Below are positions 20,246 through 63,603 of a DNA stretch of 64,000 nt, one piece after another (within the stretch, counting starts at the first letter, position 1; every line of letters begins with the position of its first letter). The DNA comes from Penicillus capitatus (taxonomy: Eukaryota; Plantae; Chlorophyta). Position numbers and translations under genes: made by a program. The notes beneath the pieces are model-generated. The model saw only the letters and a program-made list of their open reading frames with translations, was not told the DNA's origin and ran no database searches. The stretch lies in the NCBI GenBank assembly GCA_965649825.1, contig OZ287711.1:45201-109200 (forward strand), read 5' to 3'.

Positions 20246-20574
20246 TCCTGTTCACTTCTCACTCTTTTCCAGCTTCAGCTTCATTTTGATCGGCCTCTGT
20301 CGTTGTTCTCATGGAGTTTTGGTATCTGTCCCTAGAGGACACCTTTCCTAGCTACACAGAACAGCAAACCTCTTGAAGGCTTGTTCTCGCCGCCGCGGGA
20401 GGTCGCGTGTATATCTCATACAGAAAAAAGACAATAGCGTTTCGATTAGGGAGTTGCTCGGTTTTGAATCGTCAGTTGTTCAATACTTCGCACATTAAAG
20501 CAGCGCATTTGGTTATCGATCGGGTACCATTCCAAAAAACCAAAGAACATTCAAAATCAATCCATTATCCGCAT

Positions 20575-21690
<1,116 letters not shown>

Positions 21691-21765
21691 TCTGACTTCT
21701 TCTCTTTCACACAACAAACGCCGACAAACACGCCTTCTCGCAGAATTCCCTGCGAAGCACAACAA

Positions 21766-21852
21766 CCACGCTTCCCGTCGCAGGCATTATCCCGGTCCGG
21801 TGCAAAGGGTATAATCTCAGCTCAGTCGCAAGGACTGGCACCCCTAGCGTGG
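21766..21852 (-). ncRNA. TPP riboswitch aptamer upstream of THI4
   Basis: Minus strand reads CCACGCU AGGGG UGC CAGUC CUUGC GACUG AG CUGAGA UUAU ACCCUUU GC ACCGG AC CGGG AUAAUG CCUG CG ACGG GAAGCGUGG. P1 CCACGCU/AGCGUGG, P2 AGGGG/CCCUU, P3 CAGUC/GACUG, conserved UGAGA and GAUAAUGC, P4 CCG/CGG. Confidence 0.93.
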
Positions 21853-22144
21853 ACCTTGTTCAAAACAAAGCGAACAAACATACACCTCAAAGCTATGTTT
21901 TCTTCGCCAATGCATAAAAAGACCATCGGCGCAACGGAGACGACCCGCTTTGAAAACACCATAAAAATCGACCTACCTTTTGACCAGAGCTGAAAATTCG
22001 GGGCGCTGGAGGAGATCTCTCAAAACCTAGATTTTCAACGTCGGCGCGACGCTTAGAAAAATGCGTGGTCTTGAGCAATTTTGCGAACTGAGCTGTCTTT
22101 TCATCTTGCATTAGACCTTGACCCTTTCCATTCGGAAACTGCGA

Positions 22145-23161
22145 ATGAAAGCTATGGGCGGACAAGCGAACTGCATTGCGTCCGACCCGTCATGCGAGTC
22201 GCAGTTCACAGACACAGACAGCGACATCTCAAGCAATGGGATCTTTGGGGAGATTGCAAAGAGATGCTGTCGCCAATTCAAAGTCACCGTACGAAAAGTA
22301 CTTCCCACCCTTCCTTGAAGACAGATCGCTGCACGGGAATATGTTTGTGCGTTCAGGATTTTCGAATAACGGATAAAATGACAGTAAGAATCTTATGCCC
22401 TTCTCGAGACATGGACAAGGCCAACGTACTTTCATTGCTCGTAGGCAACGGTGGGGGGCGAGTACTGTCTCCAGTCTGGTAAAGCAGAGCCTATAGCTCG
22501 TGTTGACTATACGGTGCGGTCGCTCCATCCCATGATCATCCACCATACACATAACGGATCGTTCTGTCAGTTGAACGATCGTTTTTTACTTCAAGTGGGA
22601 AACCGAAAATCCAAGCTCAAGATGAATGTGCCTGTCGAGTGCTGGGGAAGCAGACTTCGATTCATACCTGCCCTGCAGGTGAACTACGATGATCAAGTCT
22701 GTTATCCTTTCCAAGCCACGACGACATGACACGCAAATGCTGTTTCAGTTTTCGATGGGTGTCAGCATCAAGCTGGGGAACATGCGAACTCTGGCTGCCG
22801 CTTTAGGAGTCCTTTCAGGCAACTGCGTCGATCGCAGGACGACTTTTCAAGTTTTACCCCAAACAGATGTGATAAGCTGTCGAGTCTCTTCTCTGTATAA
22901 ACGGTATCCTGCTGCCAGGAGACCTCTGGCATAGATGTTAGCACAAAGCTGAGGGTTCGACGTCGAGGACAGTTGATAGACGGTGTTGTCCGTGAGATCA
23001 ATACTATCATCCATCTTGGACCACCACAAGGATTTCCACCTTCTCCTGCCATTGAAATGCGGACGCCATCAGGGAAAGGAAATGGACTTGTTCCTTTAGA
23101 TGAAGATGACGATATCGAAGCAGAAGACACGTCTTCCAGTGAAGCACAAGAGTGTACATAA
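22145..23161 (+). CDS. Beta-strand-rich orphan protein, candidate beta-barrel (copy A)
   Basis: Five phase-0 introns give ...CCRQFKVTVRK|DFRITDKMT|ATVGGEYCLQSGKAEPIARVDYT|LNDRFLLQVGNRKSKLKMN...NYDDQ|FSMGVSIKLGNMRTLAA...LPQTD|ETSGIDVSTKLRVRRRGQLIDGVVREINTIIHLGPP plus an acidic tail. Paralogue at 55042-56037 supports the model. Confidence 0.75.
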
Positions 23162-30227: not shown

Positions 30228-31400
30228 CTATCCCCACATTCTGCCTTTAGTCTTCCAGTACATGGCAATTTGTTCAACAAATTCAGACAAGAGTTCAGGG
30301 TGTGTGAACACCAAAGCGATCGAAAGCGGTTGTTCTATTAAGTTCAGTTGTTGGCGGGCTCGCGAAAAGATCGGACATTCCAGCAGCAGATGATCTCTGT
30401 CTTCCATAGGTGCTCCGCATAGGCAGATTTGGTCCGGAACTCGTTCACCAAAGCGGTGTAGGTACTCCTTTGATGGGAAGTGATTCGCGGCGAACTGGTT
30501 TAGACGAGAGGCTTCAGATCGATTCAAATTCCTTCCAGGGAACTGTCCACGCCGGAAGCTCGAAAACCACTGCGTCAGGTGCTGGCTCTGATCCCGCTGA
30601 CAGATATCTGCGTGAGCTAATTTATCCAAAAAGCTCGAGATTGAGCATCGAGTCCAGCGTAGGTCCGGTGGAATTTCTTGCTGCAGACGCCTAGCCGGTC
30701 GTGAGCCACTGTTCCTGGCTTCAAGTTTTGCTGCTTGTATTAGGCTCCGACCTGGGGCCCAACTTTCTGTCGCCCAGAAGAAGCTGTTGCCAGCTAGCGT
30801 CCAAGTATATAAGCGTTCTTGAATGCCCACCGCAACAGAAGTGCACAGGAAAGTCGACAACAGAATACAGAACGCCAAGTAATTTCGATGGGGCAAACAA
30901 ATAGCCCAAAGACAGTTAAATACTGATAAATTTAGAAAGTCGCTTAAAAGGATCGTGCTGTTTTCACAACCTCATTTTATAAATCCATTCCGCATGACTC
31001 GTGATGACGTTTTACGGCGTGTCATGCTGGTAGCTTGTTGTAATCTTCCCTTCCCCACGACAATACCCACCTGGTGTTGCAGTGTGGACTAGGAAGTCTT
31101 CCAGACTTCAAGCAAAACTTTTCCACGACCTTTAAGTATCTAGAGGAGTCAAGTGATCCGTCAAATGGTGGCTGGTGGGTCTTTGTCTGATGTTTCTCTG
31201 AGCCTCGCCGTTTAGGTACTGCGATATTCACTACTTAATCCAAGATCTGTCGGGGGGAGCCCTTTCGGTTCGAGATTGCCCTCTTCTGTGATTGTCGTCG
31301 CGCGTCTACATTCTGCCAGATCAACGGGACCTTATATCAGGCGGAAACGACCAGGGTCGGAGTGCTAGATCGCTAGGCAGGGGAACTTCATGCCGCCCTA
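30228..31400 (-). mobile_element. Degenerate non-LTR retrotransposon (LINE) ORF2 remnant: C-terminal zinc-knuckle region plus eroded RT start
   Basis: EASRLNQFAANHFPSKEYLHRFGERVPDQICLCGAPMEDRDHLLLECPIFSRARQQL is the typical LINE C-terminal CxC...H....CP motif. Frameshifted DKDP..RIT.LLD.LKVVEK near 31100-31200 resembles RT RPISLL..LGKV.EK. Confidence 0.75.
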
Positions 31401-43508: not shown

Positions 43509-45426
43509 ATGGTGCCGTTGACCGCGTACACACGTCCAGGCCATTGCTCAAAAGCTATCATGCCGCATCTTCTGTGCGGACGTGTCTTCGTCGCGCCCTT
43601 CCGTACGGCGAAGATATCGCGCCCTCAACGAGACACAAGACGCAGCATGTCCATGCGCGCCAGCACTCCATCGCAAGGAGGCGTTCGCCCTGAAGCGGAA
43701 AACGCGTTTTTGCCGTCGGTAGAGGTGGACACCGAAAGCGATCGTGCTGTCGCGGGCGCAGACACGTTGTTCGATGAGTCCTTCGGTCAGACGGTCTATG
43801 TCGAAAAGGGAGAAGTCGGCAATACCGACAGCATTCCGACAGCGCCAGCGCTTCGCCTCGCCGAAGTCGTTCCCGATTCGCCAAGTTTCAATCTTGTTAG
43901 ACAGAAGCCGTCGATGGACGCCGGCCGTCAACGTCGACGCATTCTCGCCGAGGTGCTCTTCATAACCTCGCCTTCTATTTTGGTCGTTGACGTGACGATC
44001 GGCAGGTATTGACCATTACCATCCCAGCAATGGCAGCGCTGATGGCAGATCCGTTGATGTCACTCGTGGACACGGGCTGTGTGGGACAAATCTCTGCCAT
44101 CGATTTGGCCGCCTTGGGTCCCAACACCGCCATTTTCAACATGATCGCGGGGATCTTCAGTGTCATGGCGGCGAGCACGGCCAATCGTATGGCACGTAAC
44201 TCCATCAAGGTGCCTGGACTGAGCACAGAGGAGAAGACCCGACGTCGAGAAGACAATGAAACTGTTCTCAGTCATTCTTTAGTGATTGGCACAGTCATTG
44301 GCATCTCCGTCATGTGTGGTCTCATCGTCTGCGGTCCAGTCATCCTCCGTGCCATGGGTACAGCATCGATTGTCATGAAGCCTGCCCTACAGTACCTCTA
44401 CATTCGAGCCCTCTCCTTGCCAGCCTGTATTTTCATGGCAACATCACAAGGTGGATCGCGCCGCCGCCGCCGCCGCCAGCCTAGATGTCGTATATGATTT
44501 GTTTTCTAGGTGCTTGTCTCGGTCAGCAAGACATGTGGACACCCATGAAGGTGATGTTGCTCGCCGGTGTCATCAATTTGATGGGCGACATCGCCTTGAT
44601 TATCTTTGCGGGTCTGGGCACCGTCGGTGCAGCAGCGGCCACCACCGCCTCGCAAATCGCAGGTGCCTTGTTCTTCTTTTTTTATTTACGTCGCGGAGGA
44701 GATCACGGCGAAGTGGCGAAGCTCAAATGGAGAGGCCTTCCAGATGGCTCGACCGTGAAATCCATTGTCGATATGGCACGTGTCTTGGTACCCCGTTGCC
44801 TCGTCCTGATGGCAACCTATACTGGAATGACAACCGTCGCCACTGTCGCCGGAACACTGACCCTCGCGGCACACCAAGTCACACTCCAGATCTTTTGGCT
44901 CTTGGCGACCATTGCCGATGCCGGATCCCTCACAGCACAGTCCTTGATTGCCCGAGATCGAAACGACAAGCGCAAGATTCGTGAGATCTCATGGACACTC
45001 GTCAAGCTGGCAACGTATGCAGGAATGGTTCTGGCGGCCATTCAAGGATGTGCTCTGCAGTTCTTCCCTCAATTCTTCTCGTCCGATCGTGCCGTGATCG
45101 CCGCTTTCCAAACGGTTATTCCTCAGGCCATGTTGGGTATCGTCGTCTATCCAGTCTGCGTGACCTTGGAGGGTATCAGTATCGGCATGGATCAGATGGA
45201 GCATTTCGCAAAGGTCGTTGCTGGCTCCACGGCCATGACCATGTTCTCTCTCTGGGCGACCCAAACCTTCCAACTGGGTCTCTGTGGCGTTTGGACGTCA
45301 GCTGTCGTCTTCTTCGCTCTCAGAACCTTCTTGCAGTTGGGATTTCTCGCAAAGAACTGGACGCAGACGGCATTTGCTGCCTGGGATCCATCCTATGCCG
45401 TGCAACCGCAATTCGCCACCAGCTAA
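43509..45426 (+). CDS. MATE (DinF-like) transporter, probably plastid-targeted, copy 1
   Basis: IPAMAALMADPLMSLVDTGCVGQ, LAALGPNTAIFN, YLYIRALSLPA, GACLGQQDMWTP, GAAAATTASQ, LAAHQVTLQIFW; two introns. Confidence 0.93.
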
Positions 45427-61756: not shown

Positions 61757-63603
61757 ATGGCGTTCATGACGGTCTACTCCTGCTGCACCCAGCGTCGAGC
61801 TTTCGTTTCTGTTCGGCGGCCGCGTCGGCCGGCAGCGCTACGTTGCCGCAGCCGTCGCTTTAGCAGACGCAGTGTCGGCGCTGTTGTTCGAATGCAGTTC
61901 GACAAGAAGAAGAACCGCATTGCAAAGACGCCATCGAGTGATGCCCCACGAAGGGAGGCACTCTTTGAGGAAGGGTTTGACCAGACGATGTATGTGGAAA
62001 AGGACACGGAGGCGCCGGTACCAACCCCAAAAATTCTTCAAGCCGAAGTCGTAACCGACTCGCCGAGTCTGAGCCTCGTCCGAACAACCCCTCCTCCGCT
62101 CGATAAGCGACAGCACAATCTTCGTACCCTTGCTGAGGTCGGCGACGAGAGTTTGAGAGTGTGGATGAGATGCGTGCATTGTGGTGCAGATTATGGCGAT
62201 TGCGCTGCCCGCTTTGGGGACCGTCTTAGCAGATCCGCTCATGTCGCTGGTCGATACGGCATGCGTCGGGCAAATCTCCGCTATCCAGTTGGCGGCACTC
62301 GGACCGAACACCGCCATCTTCAACATGGTTTTCGCCATTTTCGGCGTAATGGGTGCAGCACTGGCCAATTCCATGGCACGCCAGTCGCTAAAAGCGTTCG
62401 GCCTGACGAAGGACGAAAAACAGAGACGCAGAGAAGCAAACGAGACTATACTCAGCCACACCCTTGTGTCGGCTGTTCTACTAGGAGTTGCCGTGACCGC
62501 CATGCTCTTGTCCTGTGGACCAACGCTGCTGCGCTGGATGGGCACGTCGTCTCATGTGATGACAGCCGCTTTGCAGTATCTCTATGTTCGAGCACTCGCA
62601 ACGCCTGCTGTCCTCTTCATCGCTGTATCGCAAGGTCTGGAGTCTCTGTAGCTTCGGGGCAGCTTCACAACTCAATGTCCATCCAGGTGCCTGTCTTGGG
62701 CAACAGGATATGTGGACTCCGATGAAAGTGGTGTTAACGGCCGGAATGGTGAATTTGATTGGAGACATTGGTTTTATTATGTGGGCAGGCCTCGGGACGT
62801 TCGGAGCTGCTGCAGCAACGGCAGCTTCTCAAATCGCAGGGGCCATTTTCTTTTTCTACTACCTTCGCAGAGGTGGATTAGACGGCCAAGCCGTACGGCT
62901 CAAGTGGAAAGGACTGCCGAACCGCACGACTCTGAAGCCCATTCTCGACATGGGACGCGTCCTGGCTTCAAGGAACTGTCTGTTAATGCTGGCGTACACA
63001 GGAATGACAGCTGTCGCCACAGCGATGGGCACACGTACATTGGCGGCTCACCAAGTGGCTCTTCAGCTGTTTTGGTTTCTGGGATTCGTCCCCGAGCCGC
63101 TCTCGCTCACAGCACAATCTCTTCTGGCAAGGGATCGCGATAACAGGGCCAAAGTGCGCAGCATCTCAAAAGCTCTTCTCAGATTCGGCGCTATGGCTGG
63201 TATCGTTCTGGCCGCCATTCATGGCATTCTACTTACTCTGCTGCCGCGTTGCTTCACTTCAGATCTTTCTGTTATCGCTGCCTTTCAGGAAGTGATTCCT
63301 CACGGAATGGCGGCTCTATTTCTCTGTTCTGTTGCCATGATGTTTGACGGTATCTGTATTGGCATGAATCAATTCAAGCATCTCACCAGTATTGTCTATA
63401 CGTCCACTCTTGCAACGCTGGGCTATCTCTGGGTTGCTCAGAGACTGCATCTTGGACTCAATGGCATCTGGATGTCACTGGGGATCTTCTTTGCCCTAAG
63501 GACCCTTCTTCATATCACACACTTGACCAGAAACTGGAATCTGTCTCCGTTCAGTATGCCGGAATCGGCGCCGTCACTTGAGCCACAGTTTGCGACGAAC
63601 TAG
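61757..63603 (+). CDS. MATE (DinF-like) transporter, probably plastid-targeted, copy 2
   Basis: ALPALGTVLADPLMSLVDTACVGQ, LAALGPNTAIFN, GACLGQQDMWTP, LAAHQVALQLFW; same two intron positions as copy 1. Confidence 0.93.

Follow-up and report, generated by a model that had tools for sequence, protein, structure and literature searches.

A TPP riboswitch aptamer in the THI4 leader of Penicillus capitatus and its candidate nested 3' splice sites

The THI4 locus and its aptamer

The window analysed here is a stretch of 64,000 nucleotides (nt) from the green alga Penicillus capitatus (GenBank assembly GCA_965649825.1, contig OZ287711.1, positions 45,201 to 109,200), and all coordinates refer to this whole stretch. 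Its minus strand carries a gene for thiamine thiazole synthase, THI4, which is preceded in the 5' untranslated region (5' UTR) by an aptamer of the thiamine pyrophosphate (TPP) riboswitch class. The two elements are located as follows:

20573 to 21690, minus strand: THI4 (thiamine thiazole synthase) coding region, from the gene model, Pfam family PF01946 and homologues
21756 to 21855, minus strand: TPP riboswitch aptamer (Rfam RF00059), from the covariance-model match, the canonical fold and conservation

The coding region consists of three exons (21690-21508, 21455-21324 and 21264-20573), separated by two introns of 52 and 59 nt, the second of which opens with AAG/GTGTTT (here and below, a slash within a splice motif marks the junction). 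The product of 334 amino acids has a plastid-transit-like N-terminus and matches the Thi4 profile PF01946 over its whole length (1-235 of 235) with 372 bits, confirming the gene assignment of an earlier interpretation made from the letters of the window (in the following, the sequence-only reading). The closest homologues are green-algal thiazole synthases (83% and 81%, Logan/JGI proteins), and the identity amounts to 78% to Caulerpa lentillifera and to 71% to Bryopsis sp. KO-2023. By these values, the predicted protein is nearest to those of the Bryopsidales, the siphonous green algae.

The covariance-model scan of the 64-kb window against Rfam, which the sequence-only reading had proposed for RF00059, returned a single match, to RF00059 at 21855-21756 on the minus strand, which covers the full model (positions 1-105) and exceeds the gathering score (60.6 versus 54.3 bits, E 2e-9). 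The core of the aptamer, from P1 to P1, occupies 21852-21766, exactly where a complete aptamer had been placed before. P1 comprises 7 base pairs (CCACGCU, 21852-21846, with AGCGUGG, 21772-21766), and the THI4 start codon at 21690 lies 76 nt downstream of it. When folded in isolation, the aptamer is predicted to adopt the canonical P1/P2/P3/P4-P5 arrangement at -31.7 kcal/mol. J3/2 holds the CUGAGA that is a feature of the pyrimidine-sensor helix, and the pyrophosphate-sensor helix P4/P5 with its conserved GCG is present as ACCGG..CGGG..CCUGCG.CGGGAAG; these elements and P1 are conserved or covarying in eight related sequences. The variable P3a stem is missing from the window aptamer. P4 reads CCGG with ACGG in place of the consensus CCUg with uAGG, so that in the RF00059 alignment a U-A pair is replaced by G-C, bearing out the compensatory change (CCG with CGG) noticed earlier. 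The match is far beyond chance, which does not apply individually to the hairpin and splice motifs described below, and by sequence and predicted fold the element is a genuine TPP aptamer and a member of the RF00059 class, and as such would sense TPP.

The leader was compared with several related THI4 loci and contigs. L001 is the orthologous locus on an ENA metagenome contig, with coding exons about 90% identical to those of the window. L006 represents genomic sequence, since a divergent neighbour gene is present on it, with L005 as its spliced counterpart contig; L007 belongs to the same sample set but differs in sequence. L009 is Bryopsis sp. KO-2023 (BSYQ01000003.1), whereas L010 and L014 stem from a lineage with 77% and L011 and L012/L013 from one with 73% identity to the window THI4. 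Aptamers above the Rfam cut-off were found upstream of THI4 in L001 (60.2 bits), L003 (64.3 bits), L006 (63.0 bits) and Bryopsis L009 (56.8 bits), and the THI4-linked aptamer occurs in four further Bryopsidales-like lineages, Bryopsis among them.

Between the window and L001, 86 of the 88 aptamer positions are identical (98%), as against 88% in the intron sequence upstream of the aptamer, 88% in the tract from P1 to the next CAG, 56% in the 34 nt following that CAG, which form the least conserved leader segment, and 92% in the last 25 nt of the leader. Because the aptamer is 98% identical, the neighbouring leader segments 56-92% and coding intron 1 only 63%, the sequence comparison indicates that the aptamer is under strong purifying selection relative to its flanks. 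Among the lineages, one pair in P5 is G.U, G-C or A-U, the length of P3 varies, and in L007 the P3 strands CAG and CUG have become CGG and CCG; the variants of the P5 pair and the exchange in P3 indicate that sequence changes fit the helices. In Haematococcus lacustris (L015, BLLF01001041.1), no TPP match at E up to 0.1 was obtained over the whole 8.7-kb locus, including 2.5 kb upstream of the annotated THI4 start, and the locus is uninformative as a chlorophycean comparator. Chlorophycean THI4 genes are classic riboswitch carriers; possibly the start of the Haematococcus gene is misannotated, or the element has disappeared.

Splice sites and upstream reading frames in the leader

Splicing of the leader can be followed in the relatives, whose Logan contigs were taken as RNA-derived. 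L005 corresponds to L006 minus a 121-nt GT..AG segment, and the sequence of L006 around this intron reads ...GCAACG/GTGAGT...(121 nt)...CCACGCTAG/GGGTGCCC.... The donor AACG/GTGAGT, proven by the spliced L005, is located 112 nt upstream of P1, and stem P2 begins with the two bases of the AG at which the intron ends. The same junction occurs in the different sequence of L007 (exon/GGGTGCCCGG). Both spliced forms retain the remaining aptamer and all sequence down to the start codon, and both fall under the Rfam cut-off with the 5' strand of P1 removed; because this strand is missing, the retained form cannot form the aptamer. The AG of P2 'AGGG' is also the acceptor used experimentally in green algae and plants (PMC9544697).

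Two further acceptors appear in other lineages. In L014, ACAUGUGUGGACGCAG/GCCGUUCUG.... comes after the retained 3' half of the aptamer, and the similarity of the aptamer-free L010 to L014 begins exactly after the post-P1 CAG, with other sequence ending in AAG upstream of it, which indicates that splicing to an acceptor about 16 nt beyond P1 removes the aptamer. In L011 the aptamer and the post-P1 CAG are kept, together with an AUG-rich stretch of 377 nt; by comparison with it, L012 and L013 lack the aptamer, and their junction is a CAG located 45 nt ahead of the start codon. Acceptors of three kinds are thus real in this group: A1 lies within P2, A2 directly follows P1 and A3 is close to the AUG. 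The one that removes the aptamer differs by lineage, being A2 in L010/L014 and A3 in L012/L013. A U/G-rich tract and a CAG 15-19 nt after P1 are present in every relative with sequence coverage, and a YAG occurs within 1-45 nt of the ATG in L003, L005/L006, L007, L009 and L011. Aptamer sequence is kept in the otherwise mature-looking mRNA contigs L002, L011 and L014.

Some side observations concern the same contigs. In L003 (503-617) and L011 (9-107), CGCUGGGGG replaces CGCUAGGGG, and P2 contains CUGG and not CUAG, hence these sequences are without acceptor A1; an off-state isoform must arise there in another way. The L011 aptamer has an aberrant P3 region and remains under the Rfam cut-off with 46.3 bits. 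The first 11 nt of L005 (1232-1242, minus strand) do not match L006 (915-937) upstream of ...TTCAG/CCTCAGTTC, which may reflect strain divergence or else an additional 5'-UTR exon located further upstream and spliced at this CAG.

Homologous positions in the window gave the following features, here listed with the predicted hairpin and the upstream open reading frames (uORFs):

21977 to 22101, minus strand: putative first non-coding THI4 exon, 125 nt without ATG, ending at D1 and 90% identical to L001
21971 to 21976, minus strand: upstream 5' splice site D1, AAG/GTAGGT, proposed donor for both isoforms, homologous to the L006 donor
21878 to 21885, minus strand: D2, the motifs GAG/GTGTAT (21885) and GTATGT (21883), present and conserved in L001
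21844 to 21845, minus strand: internal 3' splice site A1, AG of CUAG/GGGUGC and first two bases of P2, with a homologous junction in L005 and L007
21750 to 21765, minus strand: U/G-rich tract and distal 3' splice site A2, UUGUUGUGCUUCGCAG/G, with a homologous junction in L010 versus L014
21692 to 21693, minus strand: possible third acceptor A3, GUCAG/A, 2 nt before the start codon, with a homologous acceptor in L012/L013 versus L011
21737 to 21756, minus strand: local hairpin containing the A2 AG, UUCGCAGG-GAAU-UCUGCGAG, from the predicted fold
21707 to 21787, minus strand: 26-codon uORF from the AUG in loop L5 (AUAAUGC), in D1-A1 and unspliced RNA, not in D1-A2
21822 to 21881, minus strand: 19-codon uORF of the sequence-only reading, with ATG at 21881 and the stop ending at 21822

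From the GT of D1 (21976-21975) it is 123 nt downstream to P1 and 133 nt to A1, as compared to 112 and 121 nt for the equivalents in L006, and the site is identical in L001. Joining D1 to A1 would remove a 133-nt intron and leave most of the aptamer in the mRNA, whereas joining D1 to A2, whose AG is located at 21751-21750, would remove 227 nt including the whole aptamer. The position of the aptamer within a 5'-UTR intron of THI4, as previously proposed, is supported by the spliced and unspliced contigs of the relatives, and the homologous window sites are conserved in L001. The intron of about 135 nt that had been drawn from 21885 or 21883 to 21750 was not upheld, as the counterpart of the proven donor at 21976 gives 133 nt (to A1) or 227 nt (to A2). 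The motifs at 21885 and 21883 do exist, but their role as donors is not supported by the L006 donor 112 nt upstream of P1; D2 aligns with GCG/GTGTTT in L006 and is used by no relative's transcript. It may be an alternative 5' splice site, or part of a U/G-rich tract before the internal acceptor. The acceptor TTCGCAG at 21750 stays plausible, since the motif is present and its counterpart is used in the aptamer-free L010 as compared to L014. The internal acceptor A1, whose counterpart is used by two independent transcripts (L005 and L007), was not among the sites of the sequence-only reading; the window contains the AG of the alternative 3' splice site at P2 'AGGG' known from Chlamydomonas reinhardtii THI4 (CrTHI4). 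The GTCAG before the ATG, an alternative acceptor of that reading, is present as A3 but is a weak candidate in the window, judged by the missing pyrimidine tract and by its loss in L001 (GUCGG). Ab initio prediction of short introns across the window was too noisy to be of use (3399 candidates), the local intron statistics consisting of the two THI4 coding introns.

The 5' end of the transcript is constrained by a divergent gene, which starts at 22154 on the plus strand (22154-22320), 177 nt from D1, with MGGQANCIASDPSCESQFTDTDSDISS... and for which no Pfam match was obtained. A homologous N-terminus (…FTDTESDTS…) is arranged head-to-head with THI4 at the same position in L006, and the sequence is conserved in L001. 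With these head-to-head starts, the two genes have a very short bidirectional promoter region in common, and, given the ATG at 22154, THI4 transcription must start between about 22150 and the first splice donor. The only minus-strand ATGs upstream of the putative first exon are those at 22131, 22111 and 22104.

The isoforms differ in their upstream AUGs. The unspliced leader contains five, the D1-A1 product exactly one, located in loop L5 at 21787, and the D1-A2 (or A3) product none, alone among the isoforms considered. The product of 21885 and 21750 would keep three (21962, 21926 and 21915) if transcription starts upstream of 21976. From the L5 AUG, which is conserved in every relative examined, a 26-codon uORF extends out of frame with THI4 to a stop whose end is 17 nt upstream of the THI4 AUG; the L5 uORFs of L007 and L014 overlap the main start codon. 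An alternative isoform carrying a uORF, as in CrTHI4, can be read from the leader, and the frame would presumably inhibit translation. The 19-codon uORF previously put forward exists at 21881-21822 and is conserved in L001, but the role assigned to it did not hold, as it lies inside the D1-A1 intron, is removed in both D1 isoforms and present in fully unspliced RNA only, and has no ATG in L006. As judged from the predicted isoforms, it is the frame opened by the L5 AUG (21787) that matters, and not that at 21881. As a further observation, the segment between the post-P1 and the ATG-proximal acceptor spans 58 nt and is AUG-free in the window, comprises about 140 nt with 3 AUGs in Bryopsis L009 (2857-2998), and 377 nt with many AUGs in L011 (116-492). 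This AUG content suggests that the post-P1 acceptor is productive in the window and unproductive in Bryopsis and L011.

The A2 AG is predicted to lie in a hairpin, UUCGCAG(G) paired with (U)CUGCGAG, with -9.9 kcal/mol, a z-score of -2.7 on the 25-nt piece and 3 of 200 shuffles doing equally well; within 47 nt of context, selected regardless of the hairpin, z is only -1.4. The L001 version reaches -7.4 kcal/mol (z -1.6) with the AG still in the stem, and the changes between the two, a G-C pair turned into U/U plus loop changes, are not compensatory. In the window and in L001 the pairing probability of the AG is about 1.0; it is paired in part in L006, L003 and L009, and not reliably in L005 and L007. 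The 3' arm falls into the least conserved leader segment (56% identity to L001). The acceptor-hiding hairpin described before is accordingly there and stable, but a regulatory role is not borne out, since in this form it was seen only in the window, is altered in L001 and is absent from the other lineages. We regard it as a lineage-specific feature and not as the switch; it may weaken A2.

Proposed control of THI4 and competing explanations

The leader is probably best read as a TPP riboswitch of the green-algal and plant splicing type which controls THI4 through a 5'-UTR intron with nested 3' splice sites. Transcription would begin between about 22101 and 21990, and the single donor at 21976 would join either of two acceptors. 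Joining to the CAG at 21750 would excise 227 nt, and with them the whole aptamer and each of the five upstream AUGs, yielding a translatable THI4 mRNA. Joining to the P2 AG at 21844 would remove 133 nt and leave the rest of the aptamer, with the L5 AUG opening the 26-codon out-of-frame uORF, and this retained uORF would depress THI4 translation and probably also mRNA stability. By analogy with Chlamydomonas THI4, high TPP would favour the P2 AG or intron retention and low TPP the CAG at 21750; this direction is deduced from that analogy and from the logic of feedback on a single-turnover enzyme (PMC9544697). The outcome would be feedback repression of a costly single-turnover enzyme. We infer the use of the window's own sites, the direction of the TPP effect and its transmission to the spliceosome. 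The sequence-only reading had already suggested the logic of Chlamydomonas THI4, with a uORF that is retained or lost through alternative splicing, and the isoforms of the relatives support this part. Its suggestion of a possible action on the 3' splice site through the hairpin was not sustained, as the hairpin is lineage-specific; an algal TPP riboswitch controlling a 3' splice site has, moreover, already been described (PMC3597705, citing Croft 2007).

Several points weigh against control by nested acceptors. The window junctions were read by homology with the transcripts of relatives. The transcript-bearing relatives are only 73-83% identical in THI4 and differ in the acceptors present: the P2 AG is missing in L003 and L011 (CUGG), and the aptamer is spliced out at the post-P1 acceptor in one lineage but at the ATG-proximal one in another. 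L010 and L014, as well as L011 and L012/L013, stem from different samples, so that a genomic difference instead of splicing is conceivable for those pairs. Furthermore, diatoms show that a predicted TPP aptamer can be well conserved and still not respond (PMC9544697). Finally, no consistent accessibility change at donors or acceptors was observed between free and aptamer-constrained leader ensembles in the five genomic lineages, and no anti-P1 partner for the 5' strand of P1 and the A1 region, upstream or downstream, scored above shuffles. Pairing of the P5/P4 3' strand (CCUGCGA) with A2 (UCGCAGG), which amounts to 7 base pairs in the window, was no better than with shuffled flanks in eight sequences, and an NMT1-type pairing of P4/P5 with the donors D1 and D2 was in five lineages no better than with shuffled donors. 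Among the pairings tested, a conserved expression platform or alternative pairing was not found; minimum-free-energy folds of 250-430 nt were noisy.

An alternative is the intron of about 135 nt from 21885 or 21883 to 21750, whose retention would expose the 19-codon uORF (21881-21822) and on which TPP would act through the acceptor-hiding hairpin. All of its motifs exist, a GTGTTT-type donor is used locally in coding intron 2, and the D2 motif is kept in L001 and, less strictly, in L006; A2 itself is supported, and the hairpin is stable (-9.9 kcal/mol, z -2.7), with the AG in the stem in L001 too. We nevertheless consider this arrangement unlikely, as the one relative with both genomic and spliced sequence has its donor 112 nt upstream of P1 and not beside the aptamer, the D2-A2 product would keep three upstream AUGs with a start upstream of 21976, and the start of the 19-codon uORF is absent in L006. 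The hairpin carries a non-compensatory change relative to L001 with its 3' arm least conserved, its AG is not reliably paired elsewhere, and the ensemble comparison connects nothing of it with the ligand-dependent part of the aptamer. Even less probable appears a mechanism of the Neurospora NMT1 or plant THIC type, where P4/P5 would mask a 5' splice site (D2 or D1) without TPP, TPP would release it, and the choice of donor would set the uORFs. Donor masking is the best-documented eukaryotic mechanism (PMC3597705), and two donor-like sites (21976 and 21885) with three AUGs between them are indeed located upstream of the aptamer in the window. However, the duplex energies of P4-P5 with D1 or D2 were matched or surpassed by a fraction of 0.06-0.89 of the shuffles with no lineage standing out, the D1-D2 segment contains one AUG in L001 and none in L006, and the alternative events seen in the relatives concern 3' splice sites. 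The complementarity of P4/P5 to a 5' splice site that defines this type of platform was not recognizable in the sequences.

Regulation may also proceed without alternative splicing, either by an aptamer in the mature leader, where TPP would block scanning or initiation, or not at all, the aptamer being a conserved but non-responsive relic as in diatom THIC. Many algal leader TPP riboswitches have no apparent alternative spliceoforms (McRose et al. 2014, PMC4260697), diatom aptamers are conserved yet unresponsive (PMC9544697), and L002, L011 and L014 retain aptamer sequence in mature-looking mRNA. Against this stand the retained form in L005 and L007, which without the 5' strand of P1 cannot form the aptamer, the aptamer-free isoforms in two lineages, the presence in the window of the P2 AG that is missing in diatoms, and the strong purifying selection on the aptamer as compared to its flanks, so that we rate this explanation as quite unlikely, somewhere between the two preceding ones.

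Returning to nested acceptors, the ligand signal could reach A2 by way of its branch site. In the roughly 35 nt upstream of A2, the sole adenosine position common to all lineages is in the GGGAAG between P4 and P1; a further A occurs in the GCGAC of both the window and L001, and the post-P1 tract of Bryopsis contains two. A nearby branch point for A2, if used, would consequently fall inside the ligand-stabilised aptamer in most lineages. A more elaborate scheme, in which the riboswitch arbitrates three nested acceptors, TPP locks the A2 branch site inside the aptamer and the lineage-specific hairpin tunes the strength of A2, appears doubtful, if slightly less so than any of the alternatives above. 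To our knowledge, no algal riboswitch has been shown to sequester a branch site inside its aptamer.

Elsewhere in the window, two paralogous MatE (MATE efflux) open reading frames are located on the plus strand 18 kb apart (44485-45423 and 62584-63600); both carry the N-terminal motif CLGQQDMWTPMKV, and each is probably an exon of a larger gene. An open reading frame at 30231-30896 on the minus strand with a weak zf-RVT match (23.5 bits, under the cut-off of 27.5) is likely a retroelement remnant. Short tandem runs occur at 2066-2163 on the plus strand, with (GTCGC)n at about 2066-2085 and (GCGAGT)n at about 2135-2163.

Significance and comparison with known systems

The findings extend the THI4 5'-UTR TPP riboswitch, experimentally known in Chlamydomonas, to THI4 genes of the Bryopsidales type including that of Bryopsis; a literature search found no reports linking riboswitches to Bryopsidales. 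What is new is modest, namely the occurrence in this type of lineage and an aptamer that is fixed while the acceptor layout varies, and the understanding of how such riboswitches work is unchanged. With the P2 acceptor lost in two lineages and the productive acceptor located beside P1 or the AUG, the group offers a natural series for the evolution of expression platforms. In addition, the compact leaders of about 230 nt are candidate thiamine-repressible elements for algal engineering.

The closest known system is the THI4 riboswitch of Chlamydomonas reinhardtii and Volvox (Croft et al. 2007; see PMC9544697, PMC12371167 and PMC3597705), which shares with the window the THI4 gene, an aptamer in a 5'-UTR intron, the AG of P2 'AGGG', isoforms with and without a uORF and the choice between 3' splice sites. 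In CrTHI4, TPP binding leads to retention of the uORF and translation is blocked (PMC12371167). In contrast to Chlamydomonas, the lineage is here of the Bryopsidales type, P3a is missing, the uORF starts from the L5 AUG, and the relatives use three acceptors, some of them without the P2 AG; this comparison draws on published descriptions of the Chlamydomonas system. The 3'-UTR riboswitch of plant THIC (Wachter et al. 2007) has an aptamer of the same class and the same acceptor AG in P2 (PMC9544697). It differs in that it resides in the 3' UTR of another gene, where P4/P5 masks a 5' splice site and 3'-end processing is affected, and no such pairing was detectable here. Neurospora crassa NMT1/THI4 (Cheah et al. 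2007) resembles the window leader by an aptamer in a 5'-UTR intron and by a repressed isoform that keeps uORFs; there, two 5' splice sites are chosen via masking by P4/P5, whereas in the relatives of the window it is the 3' splice sites that alternate.

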